64,000 bases of DNA from Penicillus capitatus. Lineage: Eukaryota; Plantae; Chlorophyta. Below the pieces are notes generated by a model that was not told the origin of the DNA, did not search any database, and saw only the letters and a program-made list of their open reading frames with translations. How positions within the stretch are numbered: the stretch's first letter is position 1; each line of letters opens with the position of its first letter. The stretch spans positions 769,635-833,634 of the forward strand of contig OZ287697.1 of NCBI GenBank assembly GCA_965649825.1, read 5' to 3'. Positions 4,540 through 64,000 of the stretch are shown one piece after another. The position numbers were made by a program, and so were the translations under genes.

Positions 4540-6060
4540 ACACTTCTAACAACTGATTTCTCATGGCCATCGAGAAGCAGAGTTGGTCCTTGGTCCTTGC
4601 GATGATGAACCCGACTTGCCATTCTTCGTTCGCTGAAGTCGGCCCTTGTATTGATTCTAAAAACTCAAACGGTTCATCAATAACGATGATCTCGGTGACG
4701 TTTGAGAGAAACTTCTTCCTAACCGTCCGATTGCAGCACATCTATGACAGTACTGCAATGGATATGCCCTACTACTTGGTCATCATCACCTCTAACGGAC
4801 TCTTCCGTGCAGAGTAATGATAAGTTTTCTGACAGCTGTCGAGCATCATATTCATTGTCCATTATCAAGAACTTTGATTTGCCAATGTTGCCGAATACTG
4901 CCCTTTTGAACAATACCTACATCAGCAGGAGGATATTTACTCTTCTTTCGGCAGCCACACAGCGATATTACTCAGGGATCGAATGCAGCTGTCTATCCAT
5001 TGATTCATGTAAGACCTGTCTCGGCAACGAGTATGTTTGTATCACTGGAGGGACGTCTGTTGACCTCACTGGAGTTCGTATTCAAATGCGAACGGTGTTG
5101 ACAATAAAGCGTTTTAAGAATGGAAAATACGTGTGCTCTCTGGCTCCTTCTTTTTGTTGTCTTTATATGTAACGATTCTACATCGGATCTTCATTCAATG
5201 CGAGTCGTCCGCCAAAAATTTCTTCTTTCGGGCGGCTTCCTCCGGACTACTAGAACGCGTTCTGTGCTTCGCTGTTCCAGAATCGACGTCTCTGTCGTGG
5301 CAGAAAGAATCCACAGCGCCTTCACAGAAGTTATCTTCGTTTTAGCACCAACTGTTGGTACCTGGCACTTAGGTCTGCATCGAGAACCAAGGTCGTCCCG
5401 CAGCCGCCGCTCTTTCGGACTTTGTTACCGCGTCACTGTTAACGGCAGATGATGAGATCGGACTCGATGCCCTTCTCCTTGAGCTAGGGGTCAGACCTAT
5501 CTTGTCGCATTCATGCACGGAAAGGATCACCCCTCTAGTATGGTGTGGATGCCATTGAAGCTCCAGGCAATCGACTCACATCGTCAGACAGAAGTTACAG
5601 ACGTCAGTGGATCTTGACGGTATTTTGCTACGGAGTGCTACCTGCAAAGAGAATTGGATCTCCTTCTGCAGGTCGTAATGACCCGAACGCTATTTGCAGC
5701 GATGTGTGAAGCGAAAGATGTCACATCAGAGCGTCTTCAGCAGTTGTCCGAGAAAGACCCCTCATTGTTTCGCATCGTCTTGGTCACGTTGCAGCAACTT
5801 ATGACACAGACGACGGATCAACAAATTAAGTTCGATCGATCCCTCGCAACCAGAGGCATGGTTCTACGTCTCCTGCTATCATGATGGCCGCTGTATACAG
5901 GAATCTCGGGAGGCGTGGCATCGCTGTGCATTGTGATCGCGCCTCCATTTATGCCGATCTCGCAATTGGTCCTGCTGACAGTGAAGCATCTCAGAGAGAT
6001 GAATTCACAAGAGAATCAATCCAACTGACCATTACGGAACACATTCTATCTAAGTCATCC
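4540..6060 (+). CDS. Possible multi-exon gene for an uncharacterised protein
   Basis: Short ORF pieces flanked by GT/AG signals, e.g. VCIENQGRPAAAALSDFVTASLLTADDEIGLDALLLELG and VVMTRTLFAAMCEAKDVTSERLQQLSEKDPSLFRIVL. No recognisable domain, and the model could not be assembled fully. Confidence 0.3.
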
Positions 6061-6068
6061 ACTGTCTC

Positions 6069-8785
<2,717 letters not shown>

Positions 8786-26081: not shown

Positions 26082-29000
26082 CTAAAGAATGCTTATTAAG
26101 AAAGATGTCCATTTCGACGACCACGATGGCCAGATCTGAGGCTTGGTCCAAAGTCGCAACTCCTCGGATAGAAACTCTTGTTGGTCTCTCCATCGGGACA
26201 GCAGTGCTTGTCTGGAATGGATGTTGTGTTCTTGCAGCGCCGCCAGGAGCATTCCGAGTTTTCTGTGGCAACGTGCTTCGACAGATACGACATAGGCAGG
26301 CAACATGACAAGGGACTCTTGGGCCCAAGGGGTGTCTGAGGAGAAGACATGGCCTGAGAGCAAGGCAAGGGCAAAGTGTGAGGTGCGGGTTTCGGGTTGA
26401 GTGGATGGAATGCTGAGCAATGGTAGGCACCATCCGTGTCGTCCGTAAGTCACTCTATGCCAACAGCAGATGGCATCCCTCTTGGCATCGTAGAAGGGAC
26501 CCGGGTGCATCTCCGGCGGCTCGTGTACGGTGCACAGTGGCTGTGCAGATTCGGCAATCCATTGTGGCTCGACTCGCGTCACGTGATGCAGATAAATCTT
26601 CTCCGTTGACTGAACAGCACTCACGTATACAACGAAAGGCGGCGCCGATTTGGAAACAGTTGACAACGGATGTATGTGGACAGCTCCTTCCGTCCGATGC
26701 TGCGTACGATAGAGGACGTGTTTTGGTTTCTTTGGACGCTGAGTGTCAACCTGGTGGTGGGCTAGGTGATCACACCAGCCGGCGAGAAGGCAGTGCCGTA
26801 AGTGATCAATCATTTGCTGAGACGGTTCCGGCAACACCATGTCGATTGCATCCGGACAGTCCAGATCAAATGCCTTGACGAATGTCTGACGCAGCTGACG
26901 CTCCAGCGCTGCCATTTCCTTCATAATCTTTTCGTGCAGAAAAGCTTTCCGACAGAACTCCTTCCCATTTGATGACTGTCGATAGTAACATAGGGCAGTG
27001 AGTGATGAGATGGCATCGCTCGTCGAGGAGATGAAGAGACGATGGGCTTGTCTTCTTGCTGTCTTCTCCTCTTGGCCTGTCTCTCTCAAAAAAGGCGATT
27101 CCATACTCATGGCGGCAGCCAACGAGAGAGCATAGAGTGTCAGACCTTCGATTTGCTCTTCTTCTTCGAGCTCCTTCGCTCTGAGAACCATCCGAGCATG
27201 ACGCGATCCGATTGGGAATTCGATCATCTGACGACCAATTGCTGTCACGCATCTTTCCCTGTCCAGAGCGCCAAGAGCAACGAGCGTCTCTTCCGCTGCC
27301 TCGAGTGCCGCTAGATCGGGGGGAGAGGGAAAAGGAAAGTGCGCCACTTTGTGAAGATCCATAGATTTCATGAGGAGGACGACGTCTTCCAGAGCGATGC
27401 ACGAGATCTCCGGCGGCTCAAATTCTGTAAAGCGCTGTCCGAAGTGCGCACTGGAGTAGATTCGATAGCAATGTCCTGGAAGCGTCCGTCCAGCACGGCC
27501 AGCCCTCTGCGTCGCTGCAGCTTTCGAAATCCAGTCAACGGCAAAACGTGAGACCCCCGTCTCCGGCTGCAGAACTTTCTTCTTGGCACGACCGCAGTCA
27601 ACGACATAACGGATACCAGGGATGGTGATGGAGGTCTCTGCCACATTGGTCGCCACGACGATCAGACGATGTCCTTCAGGAAGAGGCTGAAAGACTTGTG
27701 CCTGTTGATGCGGCGGCAGCATGGCATAGAGCGGCAGAATCCTCACGTCTTGACATTGCGCCTCCTGCGACGGCATTTTGGGAGCATCTGCGTTTCCAGG
27801 TACCGTTTCGATATCTTCTTCGGAACTGGCATCGTCGATGTCACTGATTTCTGTGGATGATTTGGAAGGAAGGATCTGTGCGGGTCGTCTCTTCTTGAGC
27901 TGTTTCTGCAGTCGTGCACAGAATCGATCGATTTCTCTCTTTCCTGTCATGAAGACCAGAATACCGCCAGGCGGCAGTTGGCGATGAATCCTGCAGACTT
28001 TTCTGAGGGCAACCGTTTCGTAGTCCTCCACTTCTGTTCTCTTCGAAAAATGGATCGTCACGGAGAACTGCCGAGAAGGAATGTTCAGAACGGGAGGCGT
28101 TTCTGGGAAAAGCAAGGCATTGGACAAGAAAGCCGTCGCTTCGAGAGTGGCGCTCATGATGATCACTTTCAAAGGCATCTGTCCCATCACACGACGTCTC
28201 AACTTCACCACTCTCGACAGCATTCCCAGAATCAAATCTGTATTCAGGCTCCTTTCATGCGCTTCGTCGATGATCAGAACGCTAAAGGCAGAGAGAAGGA
28301 AGTCCCTCTGGAGCTCCCGGATGAGAATGCCGTCCGTCATGAAGCGGATCGCTGTCTCGGCGGACGTTCTGTTTTCGTGACGAATCTGAAAGCCGACGCG
28401 TGAGCCGAGAGGCGCGTCCAATTCATGAGCTACTCGTGCTGCTGTGCTCGTCGCAGCAATGCGCCGTGGCTGGGTGACGCCAATTTGCCCCGCCCTTTCT
28501 GAAAAGGATGCCGAACCGTAACCTGCCTCGTACAGAAATTGAGGCACCTGTGTCGTCTTCCCGCATCCTGTCTGGCCACAGATCACCACGATATCCCGAG
28601 CGGCGACCATTTCCATGATCTCTTGTTCGTATCCCAAAATCGGCAGCTCGGAACGACACCTCTCGACATCCGCCTTACGGCAAACGTGCCGCACTCGATG
28701 CACCGACCCTTCGCTTTTCTTTGGCGGCGGCACTTGTTCAGACGCCTTGCTCTTTTCTGGACGCACAGAAGACGGCATCGCCAATCCATCTGAGATGTCT
28801 TCAGTCAGAGAAGGAAGAGTGCGTTCTGACGGTTTTTCTGGAATGCCAGGAACGTCCAGCGGCATGTCCTCGACAGATTCCCGCTCGTTATCCACTTCAT
28901 CTACCAGGCGTTTCTTTCTCTTTCGTTTCTGCATGACTGCACGAAGCTTTTCGAATTCTTCATGTGGCAGGGCGTGTTGCCGAAGCTCATTGTACACATC

Positions 29001-29243
29001 TTCCATCACCATCGCCTGTGCTTTCTTCTTTTGCACTTGGTCTTGCTTTCGATCCCGTTTCGCTGGCGCATCCAATCCCCTCTCCCTCCGTTTCGGACAA
29101 CGCTGTGCCACCACAAGGCAGTTGCTCGCGTCTTCCGAGCCCAATTTTTGCCGAAGCTCGAGCGACAGGAGATCCGCTTCGTCCTCACATCTTTTCTCCA
29201 CAGCACCGCGTGTCGCTGGTGGGCGTCGTCTCTTTTTCGGCAT
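26082..29243 (-). CDS. DHX37: DEAH-box RNA helicase DHX37/Dhr1, intronless
   Basis: GQTGCGKTTQVPQFLYEAG, TQPRRIAA, IIDEAHERS, SAT, ATNVAETSITIPG and QRAGRAGR. First ATG at 29243 (MPKKRRR). Confidence 0.93.
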   Translation of the reverse strand: MPKKRRRPPATRGAVEKRCEDEADLLSLELRQKLGSEDASNCLVVAQRCPKRRERGLDAPAKRDRKQDQVQKKKAQAMVMEDVYNELRQHALPHEEFEKLRAVMQKRKRKKRLVDEVDNERESVEDMPLDVPGIPEKPSERTLPSLTEDISDGLAMPSSVRPEKSKASEQVPPPKKSEGSVHRVRHVCRKADVERCRSELPILGYEQEIMEMVAARDIVVICGQTGCGKTTQVPQFLYEAGYGSASFSERAGQIGVTQPRRIAATSTAARVAHELDAPLGSRVGFQIRHENRTSAETAIRFMTDGILIRELQRDFLLSAFSVLIIDEAHERSLNTDLILGMLSRVVKLRRRVMGQMPLKVIIMSATLEATAFLSNALLFPETPPVLNIPSRQFSVTIHFSKRTEVEDYETVALRKVCRIHRQLPPGGILVFMTGKREIDRFCARLQKQLKKRRPAQILPSKSSTEISDIDDASSEEDIETVPGNADAPKMPSQEAQCQDVRILPLYAMLPPHQQAQVFQPLPEGHRLIVVATNVAETSITIPGIRYVVDCGRAKKKVLQPETGVSRFAVDWISKAAATQRAGRAGRTLPGHCYRIYSSAHFGQRFTEFEPPEISCIALEDVVLLMKSMDLHKVAHFPFPSPPDLAALEAAEETLVALGALDRERCVTAIGRQMIEFPIGSRHARMVLRAKELEEEEQIEGLTLYALSLAAAMSMESPFLRETGQEEKTARRQAHRLFISSTSDAISSLTALCYYRQSSNGKEFCRKAFLHEKIMKEMAALERQLRQTFVKAFDLDCPDAIDMVLPEPSQQMIDHLRHCLLAGWCDHLAHHQVDTQRPKKPKHVLYRTQHRTEGAVHIHPLSTVSKSAPPFVVYVSAVQSTEKIYLHHVTRVEPQWIAESAQPLCTVHEPPEMHPGPFYDAKRDAICCWHRVTYGRHGWCLPLLSIPSTQPETRTSHFALALLSGHVFSSDTPWAQESLVMLPAYVVSVEARCHRKLGMLLAALQEHNIHSRQALLSRWRDQQEFLSEELRLWTKPQIWPSWSSKWTSFLISIL

Positions 29244-29280
29244 CCCGATCAAACGACGCGATTAATGCCGTGTTTGATGC

Positions 29281-30417
29281 ATGATGGAAGACACACTCGA
29301 CGTCCTCAAAATCTCCCGAGAGGGCGACGGACCGCCGCCAGCGAAAAAGAAAACGCGTCCGAAGACGCGACGGCCAGAAGGGATTAGCCGTGAGGCCTAT
29401 TCCCTTATGGACGGCAATCATCCCATCGTCCAGACGACGCCCTACCGAAAACGTTTCGTTCGGAAAGAAGGACTGAACAAGAAACGCAAAGGCGATGTCT
29501 CGTACGCTATCTGTTACAAATGGAAGTCGTTTCGGAATGAGGCCCGCTCGGATACATTGGAGCTGAAGAAGTGGGTCAAGTGCTATATCAATGGCGAAGG
29601 CAATTTCAGAGAGGCTTTGCCAAACGAATATCCCTTTGCGAAACTGAACAAGCCACCCGATGTGGTGCGGTACTCCGATCTGGAATGGGATCGATGTTTG
29701 GCATCGTTGACGCCTTCGTGGAGCAAAGAGGAGACGGAGTACTTGCTCGATCTCTGTCGGCAGTTCTCTCTCCGATTCCCAGTCATCTACGATCGCTACG
29801 CCTTTTCTGAAAGGGAACGGAGTTATGATGAACTCAAGGAGCGTTACTATGCCATGGCACACGCTCTGGCCTGTTTTCGTTCCGGAGAGGAGCTGCCATC
29901 CAAGTACTTGCAAAAACACCCATACGATGCAGCATATGAGCGAAGGCGACGGGAGGCATGTCGGATGGTGACAGAGATGACATGGGAGGAGGAATGGAGG
30001 GACAATGCGATACTGGAACAGGCCGAACGGATCGAGGCACAACGATTGGAAGGCGCAACGATGACGCCGTCCATTTCATCGGAGGCAGGATCCGACGTGT
30101 CGCTGAGTCAAGCGGCGGAAGGTCAAGAGCAGTGGGAATCATCTCCGCTGCATGACATACAGGGAGAGGCCTACAGACCGGAACCAGGAATCTATGTCCG
30201 CGGCGTGATGACGCGGCAGTGGGTGACGGAATCGGAGAAGCCCGCACAACAGAGTGTGATGCAGGAATTCTCAGTGGAGACATGTTTTCCGACGGTCTGC
30301 ACTCAGAAGCTCATGAAAGCTTGGATTGATCTGTGGAACGATGCTTGTGTTTTGGCCGAGTTACGTGAACAGGTGGATCCCTCGGCGGCACTGAGAAAAA
30401 CGGAAACGCGTTTGTAA
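29281..30417 (+). CDS. DMAP1: DMAP1/SWC4-like SANT-domain subunit (NuA4/SWR1), intronless
   Basis: RPEGISREAYSL, WKSFRNEARSDTLELKKW, YPFAKLNK, WSKEETEYLLDLCRQFSLRFPVIYDRY and ELKERYY. Confidence 0.9.
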   Translation: MMEDTLDVLKISREGDGPPPAKKKTRPKTRRPEGISREAYSLMDGNHPIVQTTPYRKRFVRKEGLNKKRKGDVSYAICYKWKSFRNEARSDTLELKKWVKCYINGEGNFREALPNEYPFAKLNKPPDVVRYSDLEWDRCLASLTPSWSKEETEYLLDLCRQFSLRFPVIYDRYAFSERERSYDELKERYYAMAHALACFRSGEELPSKYLQKHPYDAAYERRRREACRMVTEMTWEEEWRDNAILEQAERIEAQRLEGATMTPSISSEAGSDVSLSQAAEGQEQWESSPLHDIQGEAYRPEPGIYVRGVMTRQWVTESEKPAQQSVMQEFSVETCFPTVCTQKLMKAWIDLWNDACVLAELREQVDPSAALRKTETRL

Positions 30418-50327: not shown

Positions 50328-50987
50328 TCACCAGCCGTGTGGCAGGTCCGATCTCTTGATGTGGGAAACGTACTGTAACGGAATGGGACCCTCTGAAAGC
50401 ACCACGTCGTTTGCGGCCTCAAAGAATACGATCCCGTCTTTCATCGCGGATCCCAAATCCAGTTTCAGCAGAACGCACGCCCATGTGTTTCGTCTCAGAT
50501 GTCTCGAAGAGGAGGCAAAGTGCACGTGGGTGCGAGCCATTCTCCTCAACTCTCTCGACGCTTCGATTTCTCGCCACCTGTGGCAGACCACAGATCTTGC
50601 TTCTGGTGCGAGTGATGGACTGCCCAGTCGCACCTCTCTTCACTGGTGATGTGGATTAAACATGGGAAGCGTTCTGGGTCCGTAATGGCCTCTAGCAATG
50701 GCTGCTCTATCTGCACGGTGTGTCCCTGTGCTGCTCGGATGCGTGGAGGTTGGCTGTCTTCGTCGAGAACGAACCGTCTCTGTTCGTCCGCGTGACGTCG
50801 GGTGAGGTCTGATCGCCTGAGTTCTCACCTTATCGTTCGTCTCGACAACTCGCTTTATGTCTTCGAAGGTGACGTTATGGCGCAAATGCTGCTGCAGAAG
50901 TGGAATAGATACCCATCCGTTCGGATCCGCCTGCGGAAGAGGCGTGTGACGCAGGAGGTATGACATCTCTTTGCTCAGCCGAATCAT
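50328..50987 (-). CDS. TPT1: tRNA 2'-phosphotransferase Tpt1/KptA, multi-exon
   Basis: RLSKEMSYLLRH, GWVSI, VVETNDK, HGT, MARTHVHFA and AANDVVLSEG. Confidence 0.92.
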
Positions 50988-51858
50988 GGTCACACTCGAA
51001 CGATGAATGCTCGTCAGTGGGGTACTTCAATTGCAAACAGCCACGGTCGTTATTCGTCGACCTTTTGAACGTCGTGTCAGAAAGGATGGCGTATCTGGCA
51101 ATGGTTCGACGACAGGTTACCTTTCCGCGAAGGATGAGAATGTGCGGACGTCTCGCAGTGCATTTCTTGTTTTCATTGCAGACGAAGTTACAAAACTGCG
51201 CGGTAGATAAGAATGCGTGATGCGAGCAATGCCACCATCGTTTTTGAAGATCGCTTCTACCATGTAAAGCCGCGATGATTGATAATGCCTGTGCTGCATA
51301 AGACTTTGAAGCTCACGTGTATTATAAGGATGTGAATCATCGCGACCGTCTGCGTTATCACACGATCCGATTTAAAGATGTCAGTAAATGCACCTCAGCT
51401 TGCTAAGCAATGCGATTGGGTGATAGACATACGAGTACGTGTACTTGACGCCCGACACTTGTACGTCCTTATGGAGTGTGTTACGGGTGGATACATGTTA
51501 GATGATGTGATAGGGAATGACGGGCACGAGGAGAGAATGGAGCGCCGTATCAGATGTACACCACGCAGAATGCGAAGAGATGAACGACATTGCACATACC
51601 ACAACACCGTTGGATGCTGAGACGGCAGTTCAGAAATGGCATGGAGTACGGACTTCTCTCAGACGAAGTTCCATAACGCTCACGTTTTGCAGATCAAAGG
51701 ACTTTAGCTTATTGTTCGGCCTCACTCGCCAATCCATTGATCTTGTTGTCTACTCTGCCATGACAGGGTAATACGAAATTTTGTAGGTATGATCATTAAA
51801 CACGAATGCCACGTTGTATGCGCAGATCTCTTCTTTTCGACCATCTTCAGATTCAGAC

Positions 51859-53091
51859 ATGTCCGTCGAGGCGTGGAGTGGCGACCAAACGACGCACTCG
51901 GTGCGCTTTACGTTAATTTTTGCAACTTGGATGCTTCTCATCGTCGTTGCCGTCTCTGGCTACGTCGTCGGAGAATCTGAAGACCCGTGCACCTCCACGA
52001 GAAGAAGCAGTTCACTGCGACTTTCTCTTAACGAAGAACCCTCGCCGGCGTTATCTGCTCAAGATGCGGCTGCATCTCTTGGCCCCTACAACGGCGTTGG
52101 CTTGCATAAGATGCCAATTCCTGCTGAGAACGGCGGCGGCATCATCCGCCTTCTCGGCGGACAGGCTCTTAGCCGACCGTGCTGCACATCGTGGGGTCCA
52201 GCTCGTGTCGACTGCTTCATTCGTGGACCGCAGTCGAACGTGTTGCACATGTCCATCGACAACGGCGAGTACAGCGAATGGGAAGATCTCGAAGGCACGA
52301 TTGTCGGAGACATTGAGTGCGTGAGTCGTGCAGTCGGTATCATCTCTGTGCTAGTGATCGGTACAAACAATGCTCTCTTTGTCAAAACGTACTCAGAAGG
52401 TCAGTGGAGCGATTGGGTGTCCAAAAGCGGACAGCTGATGGAGGTGCCTTCGTGTGTCGTACGCACTCCCGCCGTAATCAATTGTTTGCTCAGAGATATG
52501 CACAACACTGGATTTATCATTAGCGAAGTCAGCGGTACTTGGGACAATTACTCTAACTTAGGCGGGATCTTGTGGAGTTCCTTCGTCGGCTCTTCAAGAT
52601 CGCACAGTATTCTGGACAATTTCATCGTTGGAACTGACCTGCACCTGTGGAAGCGAAGCTGGAATGCAAAAGGTGGATGGGTCAACTGGGAAGATCTGGG
52701 AGGTTTGATAGTGAGTAGACCGTCTGTCACCACTTGGGCCGAAAACAGGATTGATGTATTCGCACTGGGCGTGAAGAACAACGTCGTCCAGAAGACCTAT
52801 GACGGCGGTTCGTGGAAAGACGAGGTCGATCTAGGTGGCGTCTTTGATTCTGCTCCCGAATGTGTTACCACGGGCGTCGGCAGAATTCACTGTTTTGCCA
52901 TCGGTGCCAACTCCTATCTCTACAGGAACGAGTACTACGGGCAGAAATGGAGAGGCTGGACCAGCACGAATATTCCATTCGTCGAAACGCCGTCCTGTGT
53001 CGTTTCCAGAAGGCATGAGGTGTCCTGTTACCTCAGAGCCTTCGACCATCAAGTGTTCGAGGTCGTCTTCCACAACGAATGCTTCGACTGA
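51859..53091 (+). CDS. Secreted/anchored seven-repeat beta-propeller protein, PLL-type lectin-like (copy A), intronless
   Basis: N-terminal hydrophobic helix FTLIFATWMLLIVVAVSG. Seven ~45-aa repeats, e.g. WVNWEDLGGLIVSRPSVTTWAENRIDVFALG and DLGGVFDSAPEC. Confidence 0.8.
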   Translation: MSVEAWSGDQTTHSVRFTLIFATWMLLIVVAVSGYVVGESEDPCTSTRRSSSLRLSLNEEPSPALSAQDAAASLGPYNGVGLHKMPIPAENGGGIIRLLGGQALSRPCCTSWGPARVDCFIRGPQSNVLHMSIDNGEYSEWEDLEGTIVGDIECVSRAVGIISVLVIGTNNALFVKTYSEGQWSDWVSKSGQLMEVPSCVVRTPAVINCLLRDMHNTGFIISEVSGTWDNYSNLGGILWSSFVGSSRSHSILDNFIVGTDLHLWKRSWNAKGGWVNWEDLGGLIVSRPSVTTWAENRIDVFALGVKNNVVQKTYDGGSWKDEVDLGGVFDSAPECVTTGVGRIHCFAIGANSYLYRNEYYGQKWRGWTSTNIPFVETPSCVVSRRHEVSCYLRAFDHQVFEVVFHNECFD

Positions 53092-53564
53092 TGTTTGAAT
53101 ACATGCACGACCTTCTGTTTGTTTGCCGTCAGTTGTATTTCGTATGTGCACGGAATGTGGGAACGTCTCAATTGTTCAAACGTGCGTAACCCTTATCGAA
53201 CAGCGAAGATGAAAGGTTTTAGCCATTGAACAAGGAGTCTTGTTCTTCCTCCTGAAAAGCGATCGAGAGCGCGGTATGTGACGACGATGTTGATGTGACG
53301 CGCAGCCAAATGCTCATTCTTGTGACGCGATGTGACTTCCTATCTGACGGCAACAGCCGAGTAGCCTCCCGTCGTAAAAGAGAGTGACGCATTGCCAAAC
53401 CCTGTCGACACTGTTCATCAGAAGTGATGCACGTCGAGGCGATAACACAGTGGGAGTGGAATGCTGCGCACTCGAGGATGAATCCGAACCAACCCGCTGA
53501 TCTTTAACAAGAAGTCGCCGTGTTCCTGTCAAACTCTGGATTCGAGTTGCCAAAGAGATGAAGT

Positions 53565-54004
53565 GGATAAATTCCACGACATTCCATCAGTAGTAGTAAG
53601 ATAACAAAAAATCACGTTGTCTGTAAGAATGATGCGAGATAGTTTATCGATGAAGCGCGTGTCGAGCGCAAATCGACTCCATACGCTCCATCCCCATCCG
53701 TTTAGACTATATCCGTAGAGGAACAAATCTCCACTGATGGAAAAGCAGTAGTTGACAGTGGATGGTCGTGGGGATAGACATTTGTGACCGGATTCGAATT
53801 TGCCTACCTAACCGAACCACGCACTCCACTCTCCATTGACTGTTTTGTCTACAATCTTGCTGCGCATGTCCAAAGCGAGGAGGTTAAGTCGGTTGCCAGG
53901 CTATGTATGACGTGACACTCTGTGTTTCCTTTGTCCACAGTACGGGATCGAACCGAGGTTCCCAAGAGAGTTTGGGAACTACCGTCGAAGTTCGTCTTCG
54001 AAGT
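53565..54004 (-). pseudogene. 5'-truncated, decayed copy of the beta-propeller lectin-like gene, most similar to copy C (59755-60957)
   Basis: Aligns by eye to the last three repeats of copy C (LALDMR..NGEWSAWF; LFLYGYSLNGWGWSVWSRFALDTRFIDK versus MFLYGNTLDGWEWSGWNRFSIDTRFFDK). In-frame TAG at 53808-53810 (WFG*VGKFES versus WFNLGGKFES) plus frameshifts. Confidence 0.88.
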
Positions 54005-55119
54005 CTACTGAGCGTCGCCTCACACGTGACGAACGATAAATATTCGTGAGCGCAGGCGTCGTTCATCTGATTCCCGAGAATCTCCAAACTAGTAACGAGG
54101 GTGATCTGGCTGTGCTGTAAACAACCGAGAAACACACATAGTTCAGACGCGGTTTTGAGGTCCGTGAGCATTCGTCGAGGTGGACGCGAGGTTAAAGGCG
54201 ATACGTTCTTGGTATTTGAAGAGATTGGCCCAGTTCTCGAATGAACTGCCACAATTTCTTGCACCAGACTATCTCCCGTTTTTGTCTTGCTGTCGAACTT
54301 AGCTCGTTTCGAGTCAACGTCTTTATTACTAGGACTCTATTAACCACGAGCTGTACTGGAGACGTTCGTAAGGTAGGAAAAATCTGATGACAAAGTCAGA
54401 GAGCATTAGAACGAGCTACCAGATGGAGTAGAACGCTGCCAAATCTTCCACCGAATACTGCTACACTTTACATTAATATGTAGGTTTACATGGATTCGTG
54501 CCTCTGACACTAACACGAAACCGATTGTCCAAAACTGCAAGTGATATGTTTACTGAGACGACTTTGTGCATAGTTCGATTTGCTTAAAGTATAGTACATA
54601 GTGTCGGAGTGACGAGCAGCGACGAAGCGGTTTCGTTTGGCACCGAAACGGAAGGACGCGGCAGATGCTGCATGCGTTTTCAGGCGACGATTTGAATGGG
54701 CACGAGGAAGTTGAAATCAAACTTCTCGGCACGTTCCCTCCACCATCTCTGAGTGCCTGTCTTCCGGTTGCCGCGGGAAGACCGCCTCCGAGGAGCTGCC
54801 ACGAAAAACGCGTGACGTCGAGGAGATTCCATACCAAAAGAGACTGCTGACATTTGTTTACCGGGAAATCATGCAAACCACCCAAAAACACCGAATCCAT
54901 CTCACACAACTTGCAGCAAAAAAGGTGCTGTTCACAATCATACTGCCAAACAGACCAATGCAGGCAATGTGGGGAAAATGGTGTTCGTGTGCATTGCATC
55001 CGGTTTATAGAAGGCATCCAACTGCGATGAAGGACACAAAAAACGATTCTCAAACCCATTCCATTCCCCATACACACAACAGGTTCAGTTCTGAAGAACA
55101 GAAATCGAAAGGCAAAGAT

Positions 55120-56343
55120 TTATTCGATAGGAAGATCGTAGGTAATCTGAATGACTTCTTGGCCGACGGATCTTCCAGTGCAAACGATATAATCATCATC
55201 GTCATAGATTCCCTTCTCTTTCAACAAGACACAGGATGGCGTTTCGAGGAATTGAAAGAAGGCCAAACGGCTCCATCCCGACCATCCGTCAAGGTTGAGA
55301 GAGTTGAAATACAGATAGGATTCCTCTCCTACTGCGAAGCAGTAAATGAGGCCATCTCCATACGCCACACACTCAGGCACGGAATCGAAGACGCCTCCCA
55401 GATCTTCCCAGGGTTGTTGTTCGACCTTATCCACCAAGGTAATATGCACAATGCCTTTCGTCATGACTGCCTTGGCAAACACATCTGTTCTGGGCGAATC
55501 CTTCCAGGATGTCACAGAGGGTCGTTCATGTCCTTGGACAACGAAAATCTCCCGAGGGGACCATATACCCGATGTCCACCATTTCGCATAGAGGCGCATG
55601 CCTTCTCGACTTCCAAAGCAATCGAAATCTTCGGATGATTTTGATGTGCATGCCAAAGGGCTCGAAACCCATTCTTGGAAAGAGTCACGGGTCTTCCAAT
55701 CACCATTCTCCTGTTCCAGGTGTTGCAGCAAAGCGTTGTTCATCAGTCTGCCCATGCAGTCGATGATCGTCGGTGTTCGTGCGACACACGAAGGGACTTC
55801 CATGTAGGGTCCACCCACAATTTTCCATTCGCTCCACGTGTCATCCATGTAGGTCTTGTCCATGAGCATACCAGTTTCGTCGCGGGCCAAGACGTCGATG
55901 ATGCCATCGTCGCGACTCACACATTCAATGTCTCCAAGTATCGTCCCTTCCAGCGTCTCCCAGTCATCGTCGTCTCCGTCGTCATCATCATCGACGACGT
56001 CAACGTCGATGTTGATCCACTGCAACCGCGCCGTCGTTCCTTGAACGAAGCAGTCGAGGCGTAGCGGTCCAGATGAAACGCAACAGGGACGAGTTTGCGC
56101 CTCTCCGGCTCGGTTTTTATACCTCCGTATGGATAAATTCGGAGAACTGGAATTGGAAGCGGCTAATATCTCTTCGAGTGCCACTGCCTTCAAGTCGCGA
56201 TTCTTAAAGGATGCTTCTTGAGCGTTCTCTGCTGAAAACGTATACGCCGGTCTCTTTGCCGCAGAGACGTAGATGAGAGTCGGCAGAACTACCGTCAACA
56301 AAGTAATGACGGCGGCGAACAAAACCATACGGCAACAAAACAT
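55120..56343 (-). CDS. Secreted/anchored seven-repeat beta-propeller protein, PLL-type lectin-like (copy B), intronless
   Basis: Hydrophobic N-terminus VLFAAVITLLTVVLPTLIYVSA; RPCCVSSGPLRLDCFVQG; RPSVTSWKDSPRTDVFA; WEDLGGVFDSVPEC; ETPSC. Confidence 0.8.
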   Translation of the reverse strand: MFCCRMVLFAAVITLLTVVLPTLIYVSAAKRPAYTFSAENAQEASFKNRDLKAVALEEILAASNSSSPNLSIRRYKNRAGEAQTRPCCVSSGPLRLDCFVQGTTARLQWINIDVDVVDDDDDGDDDDWETLEGTILGDIECVSRDDGIIDVLARDETGMLMDKTYMDDTWSEWKIVGGPYMEVPSCVARTPTIIDCMGRLMNNALLQHLEQENGDWKTRDSFQEWVSSPLACTSKSSEDFDCFGSREGMRLYAKWWTSGIWSPREIFVVQGHERPSVTSWKDSPRTDVFAKAVMTKGIVHITLVDKVEQQPWEDLGGVFDSVPECVAYGDGLIYCFAVGEESYLYFNSLNLDGWSGWSRLAFFQFLETPSCVLLKEKGIYDDDDYIVCTGRSVGQEVIQITYDLPIE

Positions 56344-59300
56344 GACACTCTTAGAAGCGAGAAATCGACGATCTCTTATGGCAAAGTCTGAAAGAGAGGA
56401 TGAAGAAATAATGAAAACGAACTCGACGAAGGACTACTTGCATGCTGTCTGGCTGTCTGAGAATAGTTCTCTGGTCGATCGTGCCCCGAACATTGTGTAC
56501 GACGAACGCCTTCGACTGATCTTCTTGAGCGATCGCAGGTTCTTCCGTGAAGGAATCTTCGCATCCAACATTCTGCGCGAACGCACGCACGCACACATCC
56601 CGCTGCTGCCACGGGCGAAGCGTTCGCGTGTTGCTGTCGTCCATCTCCAAAAATACCTGTCACGTTTCAGGTGTCTAAGGCCGCTGCGGCGACGAAAAGT
56701 ACGGGTGAACAGGAAGGATGGTTTCGTTGGCGGTCATCTATTAGCGACGAAACCTTCAAGCTCTCTGACCGCACTCTCGCTCTTGCTGTCCGCAGCCCCT
56801 TAGCATAACATAGTTTAGGGTCCGGTGCAGTCGGCAAAACGACTTCATTCCATGCTTCCTTCGCTTTATGAAGTAGAAACCGTAATTCTTTCTATGGCGC
56901 GGCGTATGAAGCGCGATTCCTGCCACAGCACGACGAATAGGTGGCTGCGAAAAGCGAACGATGATTCACTCTTTGTGCGTGCCGTTCGCTGACGGTGACG
57001 GCGAAATGTGCCACAAACTGCTAGCTCGCATGAGCTCTCGAGGACCACCGGCTAGTAAATCCGTTTCCCGAAAGAGAAATCGTGTGCTCTCTTCGTTGTC
57101 TGCATTCTAATGCGGCGATGGCCTTATTGGAAGGAGAAAGCAAAAAAGACAGTTGCTCTTCATTTGCATATCCTACAACCTTCTACGGTCACACATTTCG
57201 AACAACATCGAAGGCGTATCCCTGTCGTCTCACTCTTTCTCACTAACCGCACAGAACACCTCTGAGGGGCGAGGCATTCGTTCGTGCTCCTCTTTCCGCG
57301 CGAACGAACACAGCTCTCTTTCAAAGTCGATGACCCTATCGAATCCCGACCGGCACTTGAGTGTTAACATTCTCTTGTCGACGCATACCTACGATATGCA
57401 TGAACCATGTCTTGCACATTAACGAGGTTACCTGATCGGCATCTTCTCTAGAGACACGGAGGAGGGTGGGGTGGTGCGTAACGTGCAAATGCGCGAAGCA
57501 GCCAAGATCGCACAACTGCTCTGGCTACGTCGCCGATTCGAGGAACGGCTCTTCCGTCTTTCGAAGAGCAAAGCAATGGATGAAAACAACGATGCGTCGT
57601 CACGGACATATGACCTCGCGACTGCTGCCCTTGATGGTGCCGGTTCTGACACGTCTCCGAAGTGTCCGTCTCCTCTCTCTCGATGGATCTAAACGTACTG
57701 CGCTCAACAATCTGCTAAACTCGAAACGAAATCGATGCGGCCTAGTCTCGATAAGATGCTGCATAAACGACTGTCAAGTCCGCCACCTGAGAAGACTGCC
57801 TGCAGCTTCTTCAGCGAGTGAACGGTATGCCATATTTCACCGATTCGCCTTCCGTCATCGTGCGAACGAAAGCCTGAATACCATTGCACATCCACAGAGA
57901 GACCGATACAAACCTTCGTCCAAGAGTGCTGCTGACGTCGTTCAGTCTTTTCCTGTTCCGAACCTCGCCAAAGAAAACAAATTTCCTTGTCGACGTGAAC
58001 TGCCGCATCGTCGATGGCAAGCTGCTCTCGAGTGGATCGAAATCTCGACAAGGACCGAACGCGTCACTCTCTTCTGCTCGTGTCGCGCAGATGCGGCAGA
58101 GAAACGAAAACAAACATGAGAGACAATCGAATGCGTTCGAGCAAGTCCATAGCCTCGTGGGTGGGACCTTCTTTTGAAGAGCTCGTGCTTCACGCCTGGC
58201 ACTGGTGAGGCAATTCGTTCTGCTGCCCGATCTTTCAACATCCGCGACTCTCGAAGGTCTGTTTCACTCCGAAGATGCGAACGGCAGAATCGACGTCTGC
58301 AAGTTCGGACTTCGGTCTGCACGATGACGTGCTTCTTTGTGGATACCCGACGCAGTGAAGGAGCTTTAGAAGACGGCCCTCCATGGCCCTGCGACGCGTT
58401 GTCTCTGTTGCGAGCATCAGACAAACACGCGTATTCATACGACCTCGTGTCAGGAAGACGATCTGTTGGACTTCGTGTGCTGCGCCTGCTGGTTAGAATT
58501 ATCTCTTTGCTCATACACCTGTCCATCTCTTCTAACAGAGTCCATTTCCCTAATGATTGTGTTGTTTTGGTTTTGGCAGGCAAATGAGTGACCGCCTCTC
58601 TCCCTACCGGAGAGAACAGAGATTCGTATGCCGAAGCCAGAGACATCGACCAGTCAAAGAACACTCAGTGACATGAGTGATTCCGCAACATCATAGACGT
58701 GGATGCGATCGCTCCCTGTTCTGTGGCCACTGGTGCCTGTATCCACTGCTGCCTTCGACTGTGAAGGTGTCGGAAGTTGAGAAGGGTTTGAAAGAAACAC
58801 TCACTCTTGATAGTGTGCACGTCTACATGGATCCTGCTAAGAGGCTGGCGCTGCGCGAAACGAATTCAACGGAGCGCATCACGCCTAGAGAGCGTTCTGG
58901 ATGAAAGGGATCCTCAGAAGATTTGACTGCGACCTCGAAGACAACACGAAACAAGCGAAAGGGTCCGTGCTAGAGAACTACAGGTCATACAGTGAACAAC
59001 GTCATCGAAAGTTAGAACATGTCATCCCATGCACTGTATCGGAATCTGTTTGCACGTGGCCTCGTTGGAAGGAGACGAGAAGCGCAGAACGGAGTAGAGG
59101 ATCTCGACTGACAAAAATCACTGTTTCAACGGAAGTGCAGTGCCAAATCACCATCCAGCCATTCATCAAGAACAACACTCACTGACTGGACGGAGAACCA
59201 GTCAGAACGTTGTACGATGGACGACAGCAAACGAATGATCGCGGAATGTTGCATTCACATCCAGCATCTCCAAGACGGGAGGCTCTCGGTCCATCACCTA

Positions 59301-59754
59301 CCATGGAAGGATGGAACGGCTGCTGGTACCTGATCGGTTCCACAGATGTCGAAAGAGTCCATAGCGATACGTCGGCACACCACGCCTTGTGACCTCTGCC
59401 TTTCTGAGCGAACAATGTCGTGCGTGGACATTCATCTGTCCATTCAATGACATGACGCTGGATGGTACTCTGGGAGTGCAGAGTCTGCTGGACTGTCCAC
59501 CTCTGCCGCATAAGAGACCCAATGTCCTAAACATGGCTTTGTCCTGTGCCTAGGACGCGGAGAAAAGGAGAGTCCGCGGAGGGAAGCTGCATGGAAGCAG
59601 AGGCATCAGCGCGCGGCTGCGAAGAATCATTATTAAAGACAGACGATCAATTGGGTCTGCAATTCATTAGCAGCCAGCCTAGGTCTGTTTGTTTTCGGTG
59701 CGGCGTCGTTCTCATTGCCGCTCCGTCGTTCGCTTTTCTCGTTGCGCCTGCACC

Positions 59755-60957
59755 ATGCGTCTGAGTCGTGCGAATCTCTGCGCGTTCCTTGTTTGTCTGC
59801 TGAGCATCATAGGGTCAGGATGCGCCAACGAGGCAGTGCATAGCATGCACGAACTGGAGCCCTTCTTTTCGCACAAGACCCCGCCCTGGAATGCAGATGA
59901 AGTGCCGCTGGAGGATGAAGATGTGCAGGAAGATGAATCGCCTGCCTTGTTCGCCGAGGCACCTCAAATCGCACTCTTCGAGAAGCATTCGAGCGGCGAC
60001 GTTGTGCGCGTTCTCGGCATCGAGTCGGAAGGCTCCGTGTGCTGCGTGTCGAGCAAGCCGGGCCGCGTGGACTGTTTCATACGCGGACCCTGGTCGAACG
60101 TTCTGCACATGAGCGTGGAAAACGGAGTGTACAGCGACTGGGACAACCTCGGCGGCTGGATTACGGGCGACATCGACTGTGTCAGCAGAAAAGAAGACTT
60201 CGTCGACATACTGAGTACCGATTCAGCCAACCACATCATGGTCAAGCAGTACACAGACGGGGAGTGGAGTAAATGGCAGAAAGGAACTGACGTTGTCAAG
60301 GAAACGCCATCCTGCGTTGTGAGAACGTCAGAAGTGGTCGAATGCGTAGTTTTGCACATAAACGCCCGTTTGTACAATCTTATCTCCATAAAAGGAACAT
60401 TTTCACTCAAACTTCTAGATCTTGGTGGTTCCATTAGGAAACGGCCGACATATGGATCATTTGACGAGAAGTCGACCACATACTTTGCCGTGAACTCTGG
60501 CAATAAACTTCAAGGACGAACTCTGACTGTAGTAGTTACGAAACCTGTCTGGGGACCTTGGTTCGATCTCGAGCTGTGGACAAGGGAAAGACCGAGTGTC
60601 ACATCATGGCCTGGGAAGCAAATGCACCTCTTCGCTCTGGACATGCGCAACGAAATCATGCACAAGACATTCAATGGAGAGTGGAGTGCATGGTTCAATC
60701 TGGGAGGCAAATTCGAATCCGCTCCCGAATGTGTCTCGACAGGACCATCCACAGTCTACTGCTTTGCCATCGGCAGAGATATGTTTCTCTACGGAAACAC
60801 TCTAGATGGATGGGAGTGGAGCGGATGGAATCGATTTTCGATCGACACGCGCTTCTTCGATAAGCCATCCTGCATCATTCTCACGGACAGCAAGATCAGT
60901 TGTTATTTGATTTCGACTGGCAGGAAGGTCGTGGAACTCATTACCACCATCTCTTAA
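59755..60957 (+). CDS. Secreted seven-repeat beta-propeller protein, PLL-type lectin-like (copy C), intronless
   Basis: Signal peptide MRLSRANLCAFLVCLLSIIGSGCA, acidic linker, then CCVSSKPGRVDCFIRGPWSNVLHM, WDNLGG, RPSVTSWPG and WFNLGGKFESAPEC. Confidence 0.82.
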   Translation: MRLSRANLCAFLVCLLSIIGSGCANEAVHSMHELEPFFSHKTPPWNADEVPLEDEDVQEDESPALFAEAPQIALFEKHSSGDVVRVLGIESEGSVCCVSSKPGRVDCFIRGPWSNVLHMSVENGVYSDWDNLGGWITGDIDCVSRKEDFVDILSTDSANHIMVKQYTDGEWSKWQKGTDVVKETPSCVVRTSEVVECVVLHINARLYNLISIKGTFSLKLLDLGGSIRKRPTYGSFDEKSTTYFAVNSGNKLQGRTLTVVVTKPVWGPWFDLELWTRERPSVTSWPGKQMHLFALDMRNEIMHKTFNGEWSAWFNLGGKFESAPECVSTGPSTVYCFAIGRDMFLYGNTLDGWEWSGWNRFSIDTRFFDKPSCIILTDSKISCYLISTGRKVVELITTIS

Positions 60958-61206
60958 GCAACCTGCATCGCAGTTTTTTGCATGGACACGGCGAATGCCT
61001 GTTTAGATTTAAAATCAGGGGGTTAATCTGCGTCTGCGGGGGTTCACGACGTTCCAGTTCGAATCGCGGTATCACTCGTCGAGTCTCTCTTCTGATGAAC
61101 GACGGCGGCAGAGGCGTGCAATTCGTCAGTCTCCTCTGAGAAAGGGCTCGGCGAATGGTGTTGGTGCATCAGAAAAACACGTCGCTTCGCAGCACGGTAT
61201 GGCCAT

Positions 61207-62079
61207 TCATTCACTCGTCACGGTTCTGCACGCAAGGTACGTCACACTAAGTTTGCGTCTGTTGTTCTGATGGAATACGATGAGAATAATCTTAGAAAAA
61301 TAAACATTAAAACGGACGCGCTGGAACACAGGATTGTAACTGCGATCTGTACGTTTCACAAACGAACAGCCTACCGCTAACGCGTACTCCCTTACTCTTT
61401 CGAGCGAATTCTCACAACACTGTATCCAGAGTTTCTTCGCCGAACGGTTCTCCCGTCGCAGGGCCGGTCGCTCCAATGCGCCCGGCACTCGATTCTGTAA
61501 AAAGAATTGAAAGCGAAAATCTCTCTGTCGCTGCAGCATCGTCATCGGCGTCAACTGCAACGTGGGATCTTTTGCAGACTGTGGAGGCACTCTTGCCAGC
61601 AAAACAACAGCCGGAGGTTGGTGACCAGCATCTTTAGTAGCGCAGACGCGGCGAGACTCGACGGAAACGATAATTGCTTCGAGGTGCACACGAACGCAAA
61701 ACGGACAGCTTTCAGTGGCGTCTGTCGGAATGCTTTCGTCAGACGATCTGTTTGCAAGCGAACAGCAGACACGCGCTCGGTCGTTGGGCGTTTTAGGTTT
61801 GGCAGCGGGAGCAGGAAGGAGTTTCGCGATTTTGGGATCAAATCTCCGCATTCGATTGGCGGTTTCGTCGAGAAAGCTCTTCGGTGCGATGACCCTTGTG
61901 TCTGTGTCGTTTGAATACCTCTGAGAGAGCCCAAGCAAGGGACGGCGCGAATCTCGCCGTTCTGCAAGGAAGGCGCGTGCGTGTTCCTCGCAACCACCGG
62001 TCATCGAGTTCGCCCCGTTCAGCGCAAACGAACGGATGAGCACGAACACTTCAGCCAAGCGCGTTTGCATGGCTGCCAA
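61207..62079 (-). CDS. Orphan ORF (290 aa), no recognisable domain
   Basis: Long stop-free frame starting at an ATG in a gene-poor stretch. No motif support. Confidence 0.25.
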   Translation of the reverse strand: MAAMQTRLAEVFVLIRSFALNGANSMTGGCEEHARAFLAERRDSRRPLLGLSQRYSNDTDTRVIAPKSFLDETANRMRRFDPKIAKLLPAPAAKPKTPNDRARVCCSLANRSSDESIPTDATESCPFCVRVHLEAIIVSVESRRVCATKDAGHQPPAVVLLARVPPQSAKDPTLQLTPMTMLQRQRDFRFQFFLQNRVPGALERPALRRENRSAKKLWIQCCENSLERVREYALAVGCSFVKRTDRSYNPVFQRVRFNVYFSKIILIVFHQNNRRKLSVTYLACRTVTSE

Positions 62080-64000
62080 ATCAGATCTGCCGGGAGGAGG
62101 ACCGCATGCGTCCAGTCAGACGGCGCGATCGAACCTCGCTCGGTAAGAGGTGTGGATTCTCTGCAGAATTGGACGTCGCTATACAAATCCCACACTCATC
62201 TAATATTCGAGTACGGCAGACCACTTGTTTTCGTACACGAACAACCAGAAGCAGCAATGCGGTGTGGTTTATTCGCCTTATTTTCTAGATGAGAGCCTTG
62301 CAGGATTCAATGGTTCGGATGAAGAGGGGAGAGCTCGATAGAGTGTTCACATGTTGCAGCACGTGTTCCGTTGAAAGTGAGCGTTTCCCGGAGCTTTGCA
62401 CACAAAAGCGAGAACCGATACTTGGCACATGCAAACGCGACTCTGTGGAACATACACTCTCTTGTCAACATTTCGCAGTATCTCCAGTTCTACTATAATA
62501 GCTTCTAACTCGAATCTCCCTAGAAAGAAAGGCAGAGCAGCGGACAGTCTATTTTGCCGATCAGCGGGACCGCAACGAGAAGTTCTTTCGGTACAACGCT
62601 AGCGAATCGTTGTTCGGTTAGAATGACGCCGCATAGAAACGTGGTGGAGCCCACCAAGTGCGATGGACTGTCTACTATGTTGAGATAACCCAAATCGCGT
62701 TTGAAGGGCCTGCGGTCTGTGTGCACGGAGAGCGCGACGACGAGGACGGCGGCGATGAGAAGGCTTGGAAATCGCCTCCGAGTCTGTAAGCAAACACGGC
62801 AAAGGCAGAAACTAGAGCACTCCTGGCAAGAACCAGACAGTCCAAGTATGCATACTCTTCTTCAGAGGTCGACAACAAGAAACTCATTGTTTCCTGAGTC
62901 CAGGAGGAGTGAAGACTGTCGTGTCTCCTGCTCCGCATCAATGAGGCTGCCAAGATCGCCGGAAATCCGTCGAGAACGGAAGCAGCGATAGAGACGCTGT
63001 CGATTGCAAGGCATGTAGCTGCCTTCATAGCAGTTGAGTGGCGTGTCCGGTGCCCAATATTCATACGTGGTTTCCATGTCTTCCAGTCCCTGTCCGACTG
63101 CATCTCCTTCGGGAGTGGATAAGCAGAAATGTCAAGTGCAATCGTCTCAGGCAACAAGACAATGACGATCTGGTGCCCATTCTTACAAAGTGCGTCTGAT
63201 GTTTTTGACAGAAAGCAGTCTAGTACAAACGAATGCCGACATAACATCGGCACCTTCCATTGAACATATCGAGCAGTAGTACATGTAAAGCTGCTTGTCT
63301 CCTTAGACAAAATGATATGGGACACAGTTTATACATTCAAAAGTAGGCGGACGGGCCGCCGATTCCTTGCACGATCCGCAGAGTACGCCAGCTTGTCATC
63401 TTGCTGACTTGACTGGTACCTATGGACGGACTCTTTGCTAATTGGAAGAAAACCTTCCCGTCTGCGGCTTTTCATGCCATCGATCACGTTTAGTCAAATC
63501 ACATGTTTCATCAAAGACGCAGCGAAGGACATTTAAAACGCTCAAGTCCACAAAACGTTCGTAGGGAAAATAAAGATGTTCCACAATGATTGGCAACGAT
63601 TTGCTAGAGAGATCAGGAGCTACTTACTGTAAGATGACTTGGATTTACGGCATGGCAAATTGACGGAGAAGAAGAAGTGGGCAATGCAGAATAACAGGGT
63701 CATTGTCTAACGAAGTATATCCCAGATGGGCGTCACATGATAGGACAGGATCTGTTCGGTCATGTGGCGCCCATCTGGCTTATAGATCGCCAGACAAAAA
63801 TTAGGGTGCCCTCGAAACCGAAACCGGTTACCGAGGGACCTGAGTGAAGAAGGAAGGAGATCTCAAAAATTGAGGAGCGGTGGCCATTACCACAAGAAGC
63901 CTGTCGAACAGGCAGCCCATCGGCCGATATCCTGCGGATCTGCGAGGTCCGAGGTGCGAGACAGCGGAAGGAATGAAGGGAGCACACTACTGGGCCCGCC

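Follow-up and report, generated by a model that had tools for sequence, protein, structure and literature searches.

To our knowledge, all characterised lectins of the PLL family come from one bacterial genus and recognise fucosylated or O-methylated glycans of the host. In the solved members, fucosylated and O-methylated sugars are bound between the blades of the propeller (PMC12203525, PMC5584973). A review from 2024 tabulated this lectin class (PropLec7A, IPR007132, the PLL/PHL class) for 'Plantae (only Chlorophyta)', fungi, Bigyra and some animals (PMC11186620). Fungal DUF346 homologues, uncharacterised PLL-like proteins of the same repeat family from another eukaryotic kingdom, were noted in a survey of fucose metabolism (PMC10481521). 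Here we describe three genes of this type in a 64,000-nucleotide stretch of the Penicillus capitatus assembly GCA_965649825.1 (contig OZ287697.1, positions 769,635 to 833,634 of the forward strand), referred to below as the window: ORF1 (51859..53091, plus strand, 410 aa from the first ATG), ORF2 (55120..56343, minus strand, 407 aa) and ORF3 (59755..60957, plus strand, 400 aa from the first ATG). With slightly more belief than doubt, we read their products as secreted or anchored, disulfide-stapled PLL-type propellers that recognise a ligand, probably a glycan, in a multivalent manner, that are of ancient bacterial origin, and that evolve by birth and death.

The initial annotation of this DNA had regarded such a system as not described for chlorophytes. 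That claim does not hold, as the review table already lists Chlorophyta for this lectin class (PMC11186620); the occurrence of the class in chlorophytes is thus on record at the database level. Searching the literature, we did not come across any paper dealing with PLL-like proteins of algae. What is new is a blade-differentiated, putatively Cys-stapled algal subfamily and an island of divergence at ORF2.

The window proteins share with the Photorhabdus lectins PLL, PLL2-5 and PHL (PropLec7A; PF26607/PF03984) significant homology, a seven-bladed W-motif propeller of about 320 residues, and the LGG, S-x-P, D-V-F-A and WxxW framework; unit 4 of ORF1 also has one complete hydrophobic (H-type) sugar site. 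They differ in being eukaryotic, in carrying a predicted signal peptide or anchor and a disordered stalk of 60-90 aa, and in having differentiated blades, whereas those of PLL are near-identical. Moreover, four of their blades contain C-x9-C pairs, and most H-type and all polar (P-type) sites are incomplete.

Bacterial PLL-like modules with Cys pairs, from a Nitrosomonas/Burkholderiales metagenome-assembled genome (MCB1985814.1), Polyangium spumosum (WP_153819929.1) and Povalibacter (HKE93938.1), score highest among the named relatives of the algal profile; in the tree they fall on the side of the algal clade, apart from Cys-less forms. They carry the same C-V-S-W...D-C-F pair in strands 1 and 2, so the Cys pair is not a eukaryotic invention. 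In these bacterial relatives the pair is present in every one of the seven near-identical blades, whereas the algal proteins have it in some blades only, within blade-specific sequence. The bacterial modules are appended to a catalytic domain (trypsin, M23 or, judged by eye, alpha/beta-hydrolase-like), while the algal proteins stand alone. The AAL family (AAL, AFL/FleA, AOL; PF07938) also consists of beta-propellers with inter-blade sites, which in the AAL case are lectins, but it has six blades instead of seven and is only 9-14% identical to the window proteins.

Fold and family assignment

The assignment of the proteins to the PLL-type seven-bladed propellers, proposed in the initial annotation, was borne out by three approaches. 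A phmmer search against all Protein Data Bank (PDB) sequences returned PLL-family Photorhabdus lectins as the only matches for all three ORFs. ORF1 matched PLL2 (E=2.6e-36), PHL (1.9e-30) and PLL (1.7e-22), whereas the PLL2 matches of ORF2 and ORF3 had E=5.1e-13 and 9.4e-12, respectively; on these PLL2 values, chance matches were rejected. Amino acid identity of the window proteins to the PLL family was 19-26%. The Pfam entry Beta-prop_PLL (PF26607) is precomputed on orthologues that are 77-97% identical to them (P0001, P0013 and others).

The third approach was structural. AlphaFold (AF2) models of ORF1 and ORF2 were built on a family alignment of 17 sequences. The predicted local distance difference test (pLDDT) score was >90 across aa 90-407 of ORF1; in the ORF2 model (pLDDT 80) it was >90 through most of the propeller and lower in the poly-Asp insert. 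The top 22 PDB matches of both models in Foldseek were all PLL, PLL2-5 or PHL. For ORF1, PLL2 was matched with E=3.9e-19 and TMt 0.82, and the top 22 had TMt values of 0.73-0.83 over 312-328 columns; the corresponding values for ORF2 were 0.71-0.80 over 294-351 columns. A second tier was formed by six-bladed fucose lectins of the AAL/AFL/RSL type (E about 1e-10, TM 0.5-0.65), and many non-lectin propellers also appeared, at weaker scores. An AAL-type six-bladed lectin was ruled out, since the match to Fungal_lectin (PF07938) was below threshold (E=0.046, 13.6 bits against a gathering cutoff of 25.3), the models are seven-bladed and the TM values to that tier reach only 0.5-0.65. Membership in the PLL family, by fold and by homology, is secure.

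The seven repeats of about 45 aa reported for each protein align with one another and with the blades of PHL. Unit 7 does not have the WxxW-LGG strand, and a strand with the family consensus R-x-L-G precedes unit 1; from these two features we infer that the ring is closed by this N-terminal 'velcro' strand.

Anatomy of the proteins and conserved cysteines

All three single-exon ORFs of the initial annotation were found, each uninterrupted and each starting at the first ATG downstream of the preceding in-frame stop; the start codon of ORF1 is conserved in its orthologue P0001. The ORF listing gives 12, 14 and 13 Cys for ORF1, ORF2 and ORF3, respectively. The paralogues were described as strongly diverged around a common repeat skeleton, which agrees with their pairwise amino acid identity of 36-37% and the seven alignable units of each. 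A tblastn search of the entire window with the three proteins detected one remnant and no further copy.

Each protein begins with a hydrophobic helix, as had been noted; the mean Kyte-Doolittle value is 2.0-2.6 over 19 residues (aa 19-37 in ORF1, aa 6-24 in ORF2 and ORF3). The N-termini of ORF2 and ORF3 look like cleavable signal peptides. In ORF2 the predicted peptide spans aa 1-29, with cleavage between ...LIYVSAA and KRP, and is followed by a helical or disordered linker and the seven-bladed propeller. In ORF3, a classical signal peptide would be cleaved after MRLSRANLCAFLVCLLSIIGSGCA and before NE, ahead of an acidic linker and the propeller. In ORF1, an n-region of 16 residues precedes an h-region of 21, with the hydrophobic helix at aa 17-38, which may be a signal anchor or a signal peptide. 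Its disordered linker extends to about aa 84, the velcro strand (IIRLLGG) lies at aa 94-102, and the blade units begin at aa 103, 148, 193, 238, 284, 329 and 374. The linkers, rightly called unrelated in the initial annotation, comprise 60-80 residues that are unconserved between the paralogues and predicted to be disordered. Their pLDDT was <50 for residues 1-81 of ORF1 and for residues 1-6 and 15-68 of ORF2, where the model also placed isolated helices of low confidence. None of the three proteins has a C-terminal hydrophobic tail.

Poly-Asp inserts occur within the blade loops of units 1 and 7 of ORF2 (aa 113-127 and 384-387). The unit 1 tract is encoded by an 18-bp tandem repeat (55963..56008, minus strand; translation DVDVVDDDDDGDDDD). 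Such tracts were present only in ORF2, and P0012 and P0014 are without them.

Across 17 family members, seven Cys columns were invariant and three nearly invariant. In units 1, 3, 6 and 7, strands 1 and 2 contain a C-x9-C pair (P-x-C-V...x-C-F). These four units are variants of the repeat pattern P-S-V-T-S-W...D-V-F-A that the initial annotation had given for all blades, and which is clearest in unit 5, its exact form being typical of that unit only. The C-x9-C pairs would form intrablade disulfides, and an additional Cys in unit 1 probably links to the lone Cys in unit 2. Together with the signal peptides and the lack of a C-terminal hydrophobic tail, the Cys pattern suggests an oxidising, extracellular destination of the proteins.

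Candidate sugar-binding pockets

Two kinds of sugar site have been described in PHL (PMC5584973, PMC12203525). The hydrophobic, H-type site for fucose or O-methyl sugars is formed by Trp199 of strand 3, the second Trp of the WxxW motif (Trp214), Thr194 of turn T2 and backbone atoms. The polar, P-type site consists of Arg91 and Glu93 of strand 2, the second Trp of strand 3 (Trp107), Gln155 and the first Trp of WxxW (Trp163). We located the equivalent positions in 14 close and 10 distant colinear relatives as well as in all 21 units of the window proteins.

In unit 4 of ORF1, Thr259, Trp264 and Trp277 make up a complete H-type site. In unit 6, Tyr355, Trp364 and Trp367 (ORF1 numbering) are invariant in the window ORFs and in essentially all 14 close relatives, one of which has Arg for Trp364. 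Both Trp residues are also present in 10/10 distant relatives and Tyr355 in 6/10. Unit 2 retains WxxW and, with respect to the P-type site, R-x-D is retained in units 1 and 5 only. The best candidate pockets are therefore those of unit 6, with the aromatic pair Tyr355/Trp367 and Trp364, and of ORF1 unit 4, with its canonical fucose-type site. At most one to three putative pockets appear to be preserved per protein.

Distribution of relatives

A word-indexed search with ORF1, followed by a family-profile search, recovered close relatives only on ENA contigs (4.08 Mb, 1.46 Mb, 192 kb, 37 kb, 25 kb and 6 kb) of the same algal lineage. Otherwise, the word-indexed profile search yielded only a few bacterial multidomain proteins, including one from Streptomyces. 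An exhaustive hidden Markov model (HMM) search of 1.84 billion representatives gave 9223 related clusters at E<=1e-3 and 767 at E<=1e-30. Ten distant relatives were 'eukaryote-like', i.e. colinear and blade-differentiated, and all of them were metagenome proteins. For 20 further top matches that we looked up, all organism names were bacterial (Nitrosomonas, Povalibacter, Polyangium, Solirubrobacterales, Nitrospira). No named plant or algal protein was present among the close matches or the best 150 of the exhaustive HMM search. The bacterial propellers are joined to secreted peptidases (M43, matrixin, trypsin and M23), melibiase, glucose/sorbosone dehydrogenase, tyrosinase and Ser/Thr kinases, and to an N-terminal domain that by eye is alpha/beta-hydrolase-like.

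A divergent paralogue, P0163, was located on a 954-kb contig (locus L006) that comes from the sample of the 1.46-Mb contig and equals it in coverage (41x), meaning that one alga holds deeply divergent paralogues on separate contigs. Its neighbours are Hira, WD40, Y-family polymerase and retroelement genes; a retroelement (RVT_1 with integrase rve/H2C2) lies at 2357-4053 of L006, about 6 kb from P0163.

Pattern scans of viral contigs (IMG/VR), metagenome contigs (JGI) and bacterial and archaeal genomes (GTDB) gave no confirmed close relative; the patterns were algal-specific and have little bearing on distant ones. Foldseek against viral structures returned generic propellers only, and a link to giant viruses was dropped on that result.

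Proposed function and origin

In the reading that we favour, a signal peptide or anchor would bring the proteins out of the cell or tether them to its surface, where a flexible, unconserved stalk would carry a closed seven-bladed propeller, stiffened by the C-x9-C pairs of units 1, 3, 6 and 7 and by the link between units 1 and 2. Pockets between adjacent blades would bind carbohydrate, or another small surface epitope, multivalently as in PLL/PHL, and the proteins would act as recognition or adhesion molecules outside the cell. The family would share a single origin with the bacterial Cys-pair propellers of secreted hydrolases, the simplest account being one ancient bacterium-to-alga transfer that is now fully domesticated. 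It would turn over by inverted segmental duplication, inversion, truncation and pseudogenisation, and the ORF2 type would combine high amino acid turnover with retention of the fold-defining residues.

If this reading is correct, a disulfide-stapled, secreted, blade-differentiated eukaryotic branch would widen the structural and ligand range of the scaffold, which is useful for probing glycans. A further probable instance of ancient inter-domain gene domestication would be on record, this one in green algae. Furthermore, the family would offer a small, intron-free family system for testing whether microalgae recognise partners or enemies by rapidly evolving secreted lectins.

Several points weigh against it. 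Genes and proteins are known here from DNA sequence alone, which is also the sole basis for the predicted signal-peptide cleavage and disulfides, and the long n-region of ORF1 fits a type II signal anchor equally well as a signal peptide. The local Pfam scan gave no significant match for the window proteins, neither PF26607 nor DUF346; the local copy probably lacks PF26607, as it was silent even on proteins with a precomputed match to this entry. The H-type site in unit 4 of ORF1 is the only complete one among the 21 window units; apart from unit 6 with its Tyr, the others have Leu, Phe, Met, Val or Gln at the strand-3 position. The strand-3 Trp of the P-type site was likewise found in 1/21 units, namely unit 4 of ORF2, where the site lacks its second Trp and has Asp in place of the strand-2 Arg; outside the window ORFs, the strand-3 Trp is confined to a few units among the distant relatives. 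A complete P-type site was found in 0/21 units. Since the canonical residues of both sites are mostly absent, neither sugar specificity nor lectin activity can be transferred from PLL to the window proteins.

The bacterial origin also has points against it. A neighbour-joining tree (305 profile-aligned columns, 300 bootstraps) separated eukaryote-like from bacterial sequences in 298/300 replicates, and eukaryote-like plus Cys-pair bacterial from Cys-less bacterial sequences in 278/300, but it is a simple distance tree of near-saturated repeats (maximum p-distance 0.86) in which bacteria are thinly sampled and the metagenome proteins are unlabelled. In addition, the patchy occurrence of PropLec7A in eukaryotes leaves vertical inheritance with losses, or transfer from a eukaryote to a bacterium, formally possible (PMC11186620).

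It is unlikely, though to be taken seriously, that the propellers are an old eukaryotic family, vertically inherited, lost from most sequenced lineages and free of bacterial horizontal gene transfer, the likeness to bacteria being due to common descent or to transfer in the reverse direction. The composition of the genes is host-like: GC was 0.50-0.53 and GC3 0.56-0.61 in the three ORFs, compared with 0.50-0.54 and 0.48-0.61 in seven neighbouring genes, and the relative synonymous codon usage of the ORFs correlated with that of the host at r=0.66, where one half of the host genes correlated with the other at 0.75. Deeply divergent paralogues stand on another contig of the same alga, among typical eukaryotic genes, and the eukaryote-like sequences form one clade with deep internal branches. 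PropLec7A is also reported from several eukaryotic groups (PMC11186620; for fungi, PMC10481521). Vertical descent agrees less well with the recovered names, which were all bacterial, with no named plant or alga among the close matches or the best 150 HMM matches. Nor does it fit easily with the bacterial diversity and domain contexts, which are far greater, or with a eukaryotic distribution that is very patchy.

The initial annotation had proposed that the family was possibly acquired horizontally. In favour of this, bacteria supply the nearest relatives with a name, and the Cys-pair bacteria stand next to a single clade of eukaryote-like sequences. A recent transfer is rejected by the host-like composition and the deep paralogy. 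Transfer from bacteria is plausible, with its direction unproven; if it took place at all, it was ancient, because composition and codon usage are host-like and the same alga holds deeply divergent paralogues. Absence of introns is uninformative here, in agreement with the caveat in the initial annotation that it cannot prove horizontal transfer.

Another explanation concerns function. We consider it rather improbable that the propellers, no longer active as lectins, are extracellular scaffolds or protein-binding modules, for instance as components of wall or matrix or as partners of enzymes, and resemble PLL by ancestry only. Such a role would be consistent with the replacement of most canonical H- and P-site residues and with conservation that falls mainly on the core, the Cys residues and the WxxW/LGG framework. 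Beta-propellers are generic interaction platforms, and the Foldseek matches include the more weakly scoring non-lectin propellers. Loss of sugar binding would, however, leave several features unaccounted for. The aromatic pair at the H-site positions of unit 6 does not vary within the close algal family, both WxxW Trp residues of this unit are kept in 10/10 distant relatives, and unit 4 of ORF1 retains a full canonical site. Moreover, the next-best structural relatives (AAL/AFL/RSL) are fucose lectins too, and the bacterial module is joined to glycan-active or secreted enzymes. We retain multivalent ligand recognition as the favoured function.

Divergence of ORF2

The ratio of nonsynonymous to synonymous substitution rates (dN/dS) in pairwise comparisons was 0.39 for ORF1 against P0001 and 0.30 for ORF3 against P0013 (97% aa identity). 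In 250-bp windows, ORF3 was 95-100% identical to the colinear segment in a relative's locus (L002). The coding sequence of ORF2 was 77-87% identical to both homologous segments in the same kind of windows, as opposed to 92-99% for its flanks; ORF2 diverges 3-5x faster than its own flanks. The spacers at 56400-59700 and 61000-64000 contain only ORFs without Pfam matches and are 92-100% identical to the relative's duplicated segments, above the value for the ORF2 coding sequence.

Comparisons among ORF2, P0012 and P0014 gave dN/dS of 0.68-1.11, with dS of 0.17-0.26 exceeding the divergence of the flanks. In units 1, 3 and 5, dN was equal to or higher than dS, as it was in unit 4 for ORF2 against P0014, whereas units 2 and 6 are conserved. 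Inspection of the alignment revealed that all three copies retain full ORFs and all 12 propeller Cys. When 16% random substitution was simulated, the ORF stayed intact in 0.06% of cases and the Cys were retained in 0.5%; ORF2-type copies are thus not decaying neutrally. The pattern points to a constrained fold with fast-changing surfaces. Diversifying or balancing selection, or gene conversion between paralogues, are possible causes of the divergence.

A bolder proposal, to which we give only a slim chance, is that the ORF2 type determines recognition outside the cell and is hypervariable. It would then be a lectin propeller of bacterial derivation, domesticated and kept under diversifying or balancing selection, with allele or paralogue lineages older than the flanking DNA, and the inverted-repeat cluster would be an algal self/non-self locus acting towards gametes, symbionts or pathogens. 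The likeness to plant R-gene or fungal het loci is one of logic only. The ORF2 divergence island is the most testable lead at this locus, the remainder being an expected lineage-specific expansion.

Turnover of the cluster

The decayed fourth copy that had been placed at 53565-54004 is real, but it lies on the minus strand at 53586..54009 and is only a C-terminal remnant. It is of the ORF3 type and stands tail-to-tail with ORF1. Only units 5-7 remain, i.e. the last ~140 codons (ORF3 residues 250-388), the 5' part being gone. It is 58% identical to ORF3 at the amino acid level (aa 277-388) and 76% identical in nucleotides to the ORF3 orthologue in L002, and it has two in-frame stops, one frameshift and the loss of one conserved Cys.

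The remnant and its 3' flank form the left arm (53380..53905) of an inverted repeat whose right arm (60605..61133) comprises the 3' end and 3' flank of ORF3. The arms are 71-79% complementary, about 7 kb apart, and bracket ORF2. In locus L005 of the relative, the stretch between the arms has the opposite orientation, an inversion for which the inverted repeat is a plausible substrate.

The 1.46-Mb contig of the relative contains three clusters inside about 260 kb: P0006 and P0007 near 99-106 kb, P0014 and P0013 near 295-300 kb, and a frameshifted, insert-bearing ORF1 orthologue with the truncated P0016 and P0012 near 344-352 kb. Window positions 54600-64000 are colinear with the second of these at 91% DNA identity. 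Positions 54600-60480 also match the third cluster, inverted, at 84-95%, and 51917-53503 match its ORF1 side at 94-97%. In a third genome (L001), the ORF1 orthologue is followed by an ORF3-like copy placed tail-to-tail. The birth-and-death expansion suggested in the initial annotation is seen directly across these loci, as a pseudogene, truncated copies, inverted duplications and an inversion, and rearrangement of the cluster is rapid.

The ORF1 orthologue of the close relative (3089-5238 of L005) is interrupted twice: its frame changes near 3556, and it contains an insertion of 937 bp (3895-4832) that the window does not have. Decay into a pseudogene, gain of an intron or insertion, or an error in assembling the long reads may explain this.

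That the ORFs are non-functional relics, chance ORFs, bacterial contamination or an assembly chimera is very improbable: one clear pseudogene, the interrupted ORF1 orthologue of the relative, the dN/dS near 1 of ORF2 and the knowledge of the ORFs as sequence only would fit, but at least three independent assemblies have intact orthologues that are arranged alike and flanked by eukaryotic genes, dN/dS is 0.30-0.39 for ORF1 and ORF3, the intactness and Cys retention of ORF2 are incompatible with neutral decay, and the composition is identical to that of the neighbours, so that contamination and chimerism are rejected by synteny together with composition.

Faint Chlam_PMP/Beta_helix matches were observed within a few kb of PLL-like genes, at 1575-3422 of L001 and 6073-7611 of L007. 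The matches may be due to chance, or these ORFs may belong to a further family of secreted repeat proteins situated near the propellers.

Host genome and neighbouring genes

The attribution to a green-algal genome agrees with the DHX37 gene of the window (26082-29252, minus strand, single ORF), the best named matches of which are chlorophytes: [Myrmecia] bisecta, Bryopsis, Ostreobium, Trebouxia, Coccomyxa and Picochlorum, at about 40-42% identity. On ENA metagenome contigs, DHX37 was matched at 99% and 88% identity. The host is thus a chlorophyte for which no closely related species has been annotated. A Sec23/24 gene (6387-8588, minus strand) is divided over two ORFs, one with the zinc finger and trunk (7713-8588) and one with the beta-sandwich and helical domains (6387-7298), so this genome does have introns. 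On its left, the cluster is adjoined by a Tpt1/KptA RNA 2'-phosphotransferase gene (50328-50993, minus strand), with profile positions 4-66 in 50640-50993 and 110-177 in 50328-50633; its split over two ORFs implies a short intron or a frameshift. An ion channel gene is also present in the window, and Rfam and tRNA scans of the window gave no matches.

On the plus strand, 25139-26002 codes for a fragment of a TLC-type ATP/ADP transporter (its C-terminal 190 residues) and 29281-30417 for DMAP1, as a single ORF. The transporter fragment, DHX37 and DMAP1 are packed within about 5 kb, which shows that the genome is very compact. The DHX37 protein is about 100-350 aa shorter than most of the named plant and algal homologues among its matches.

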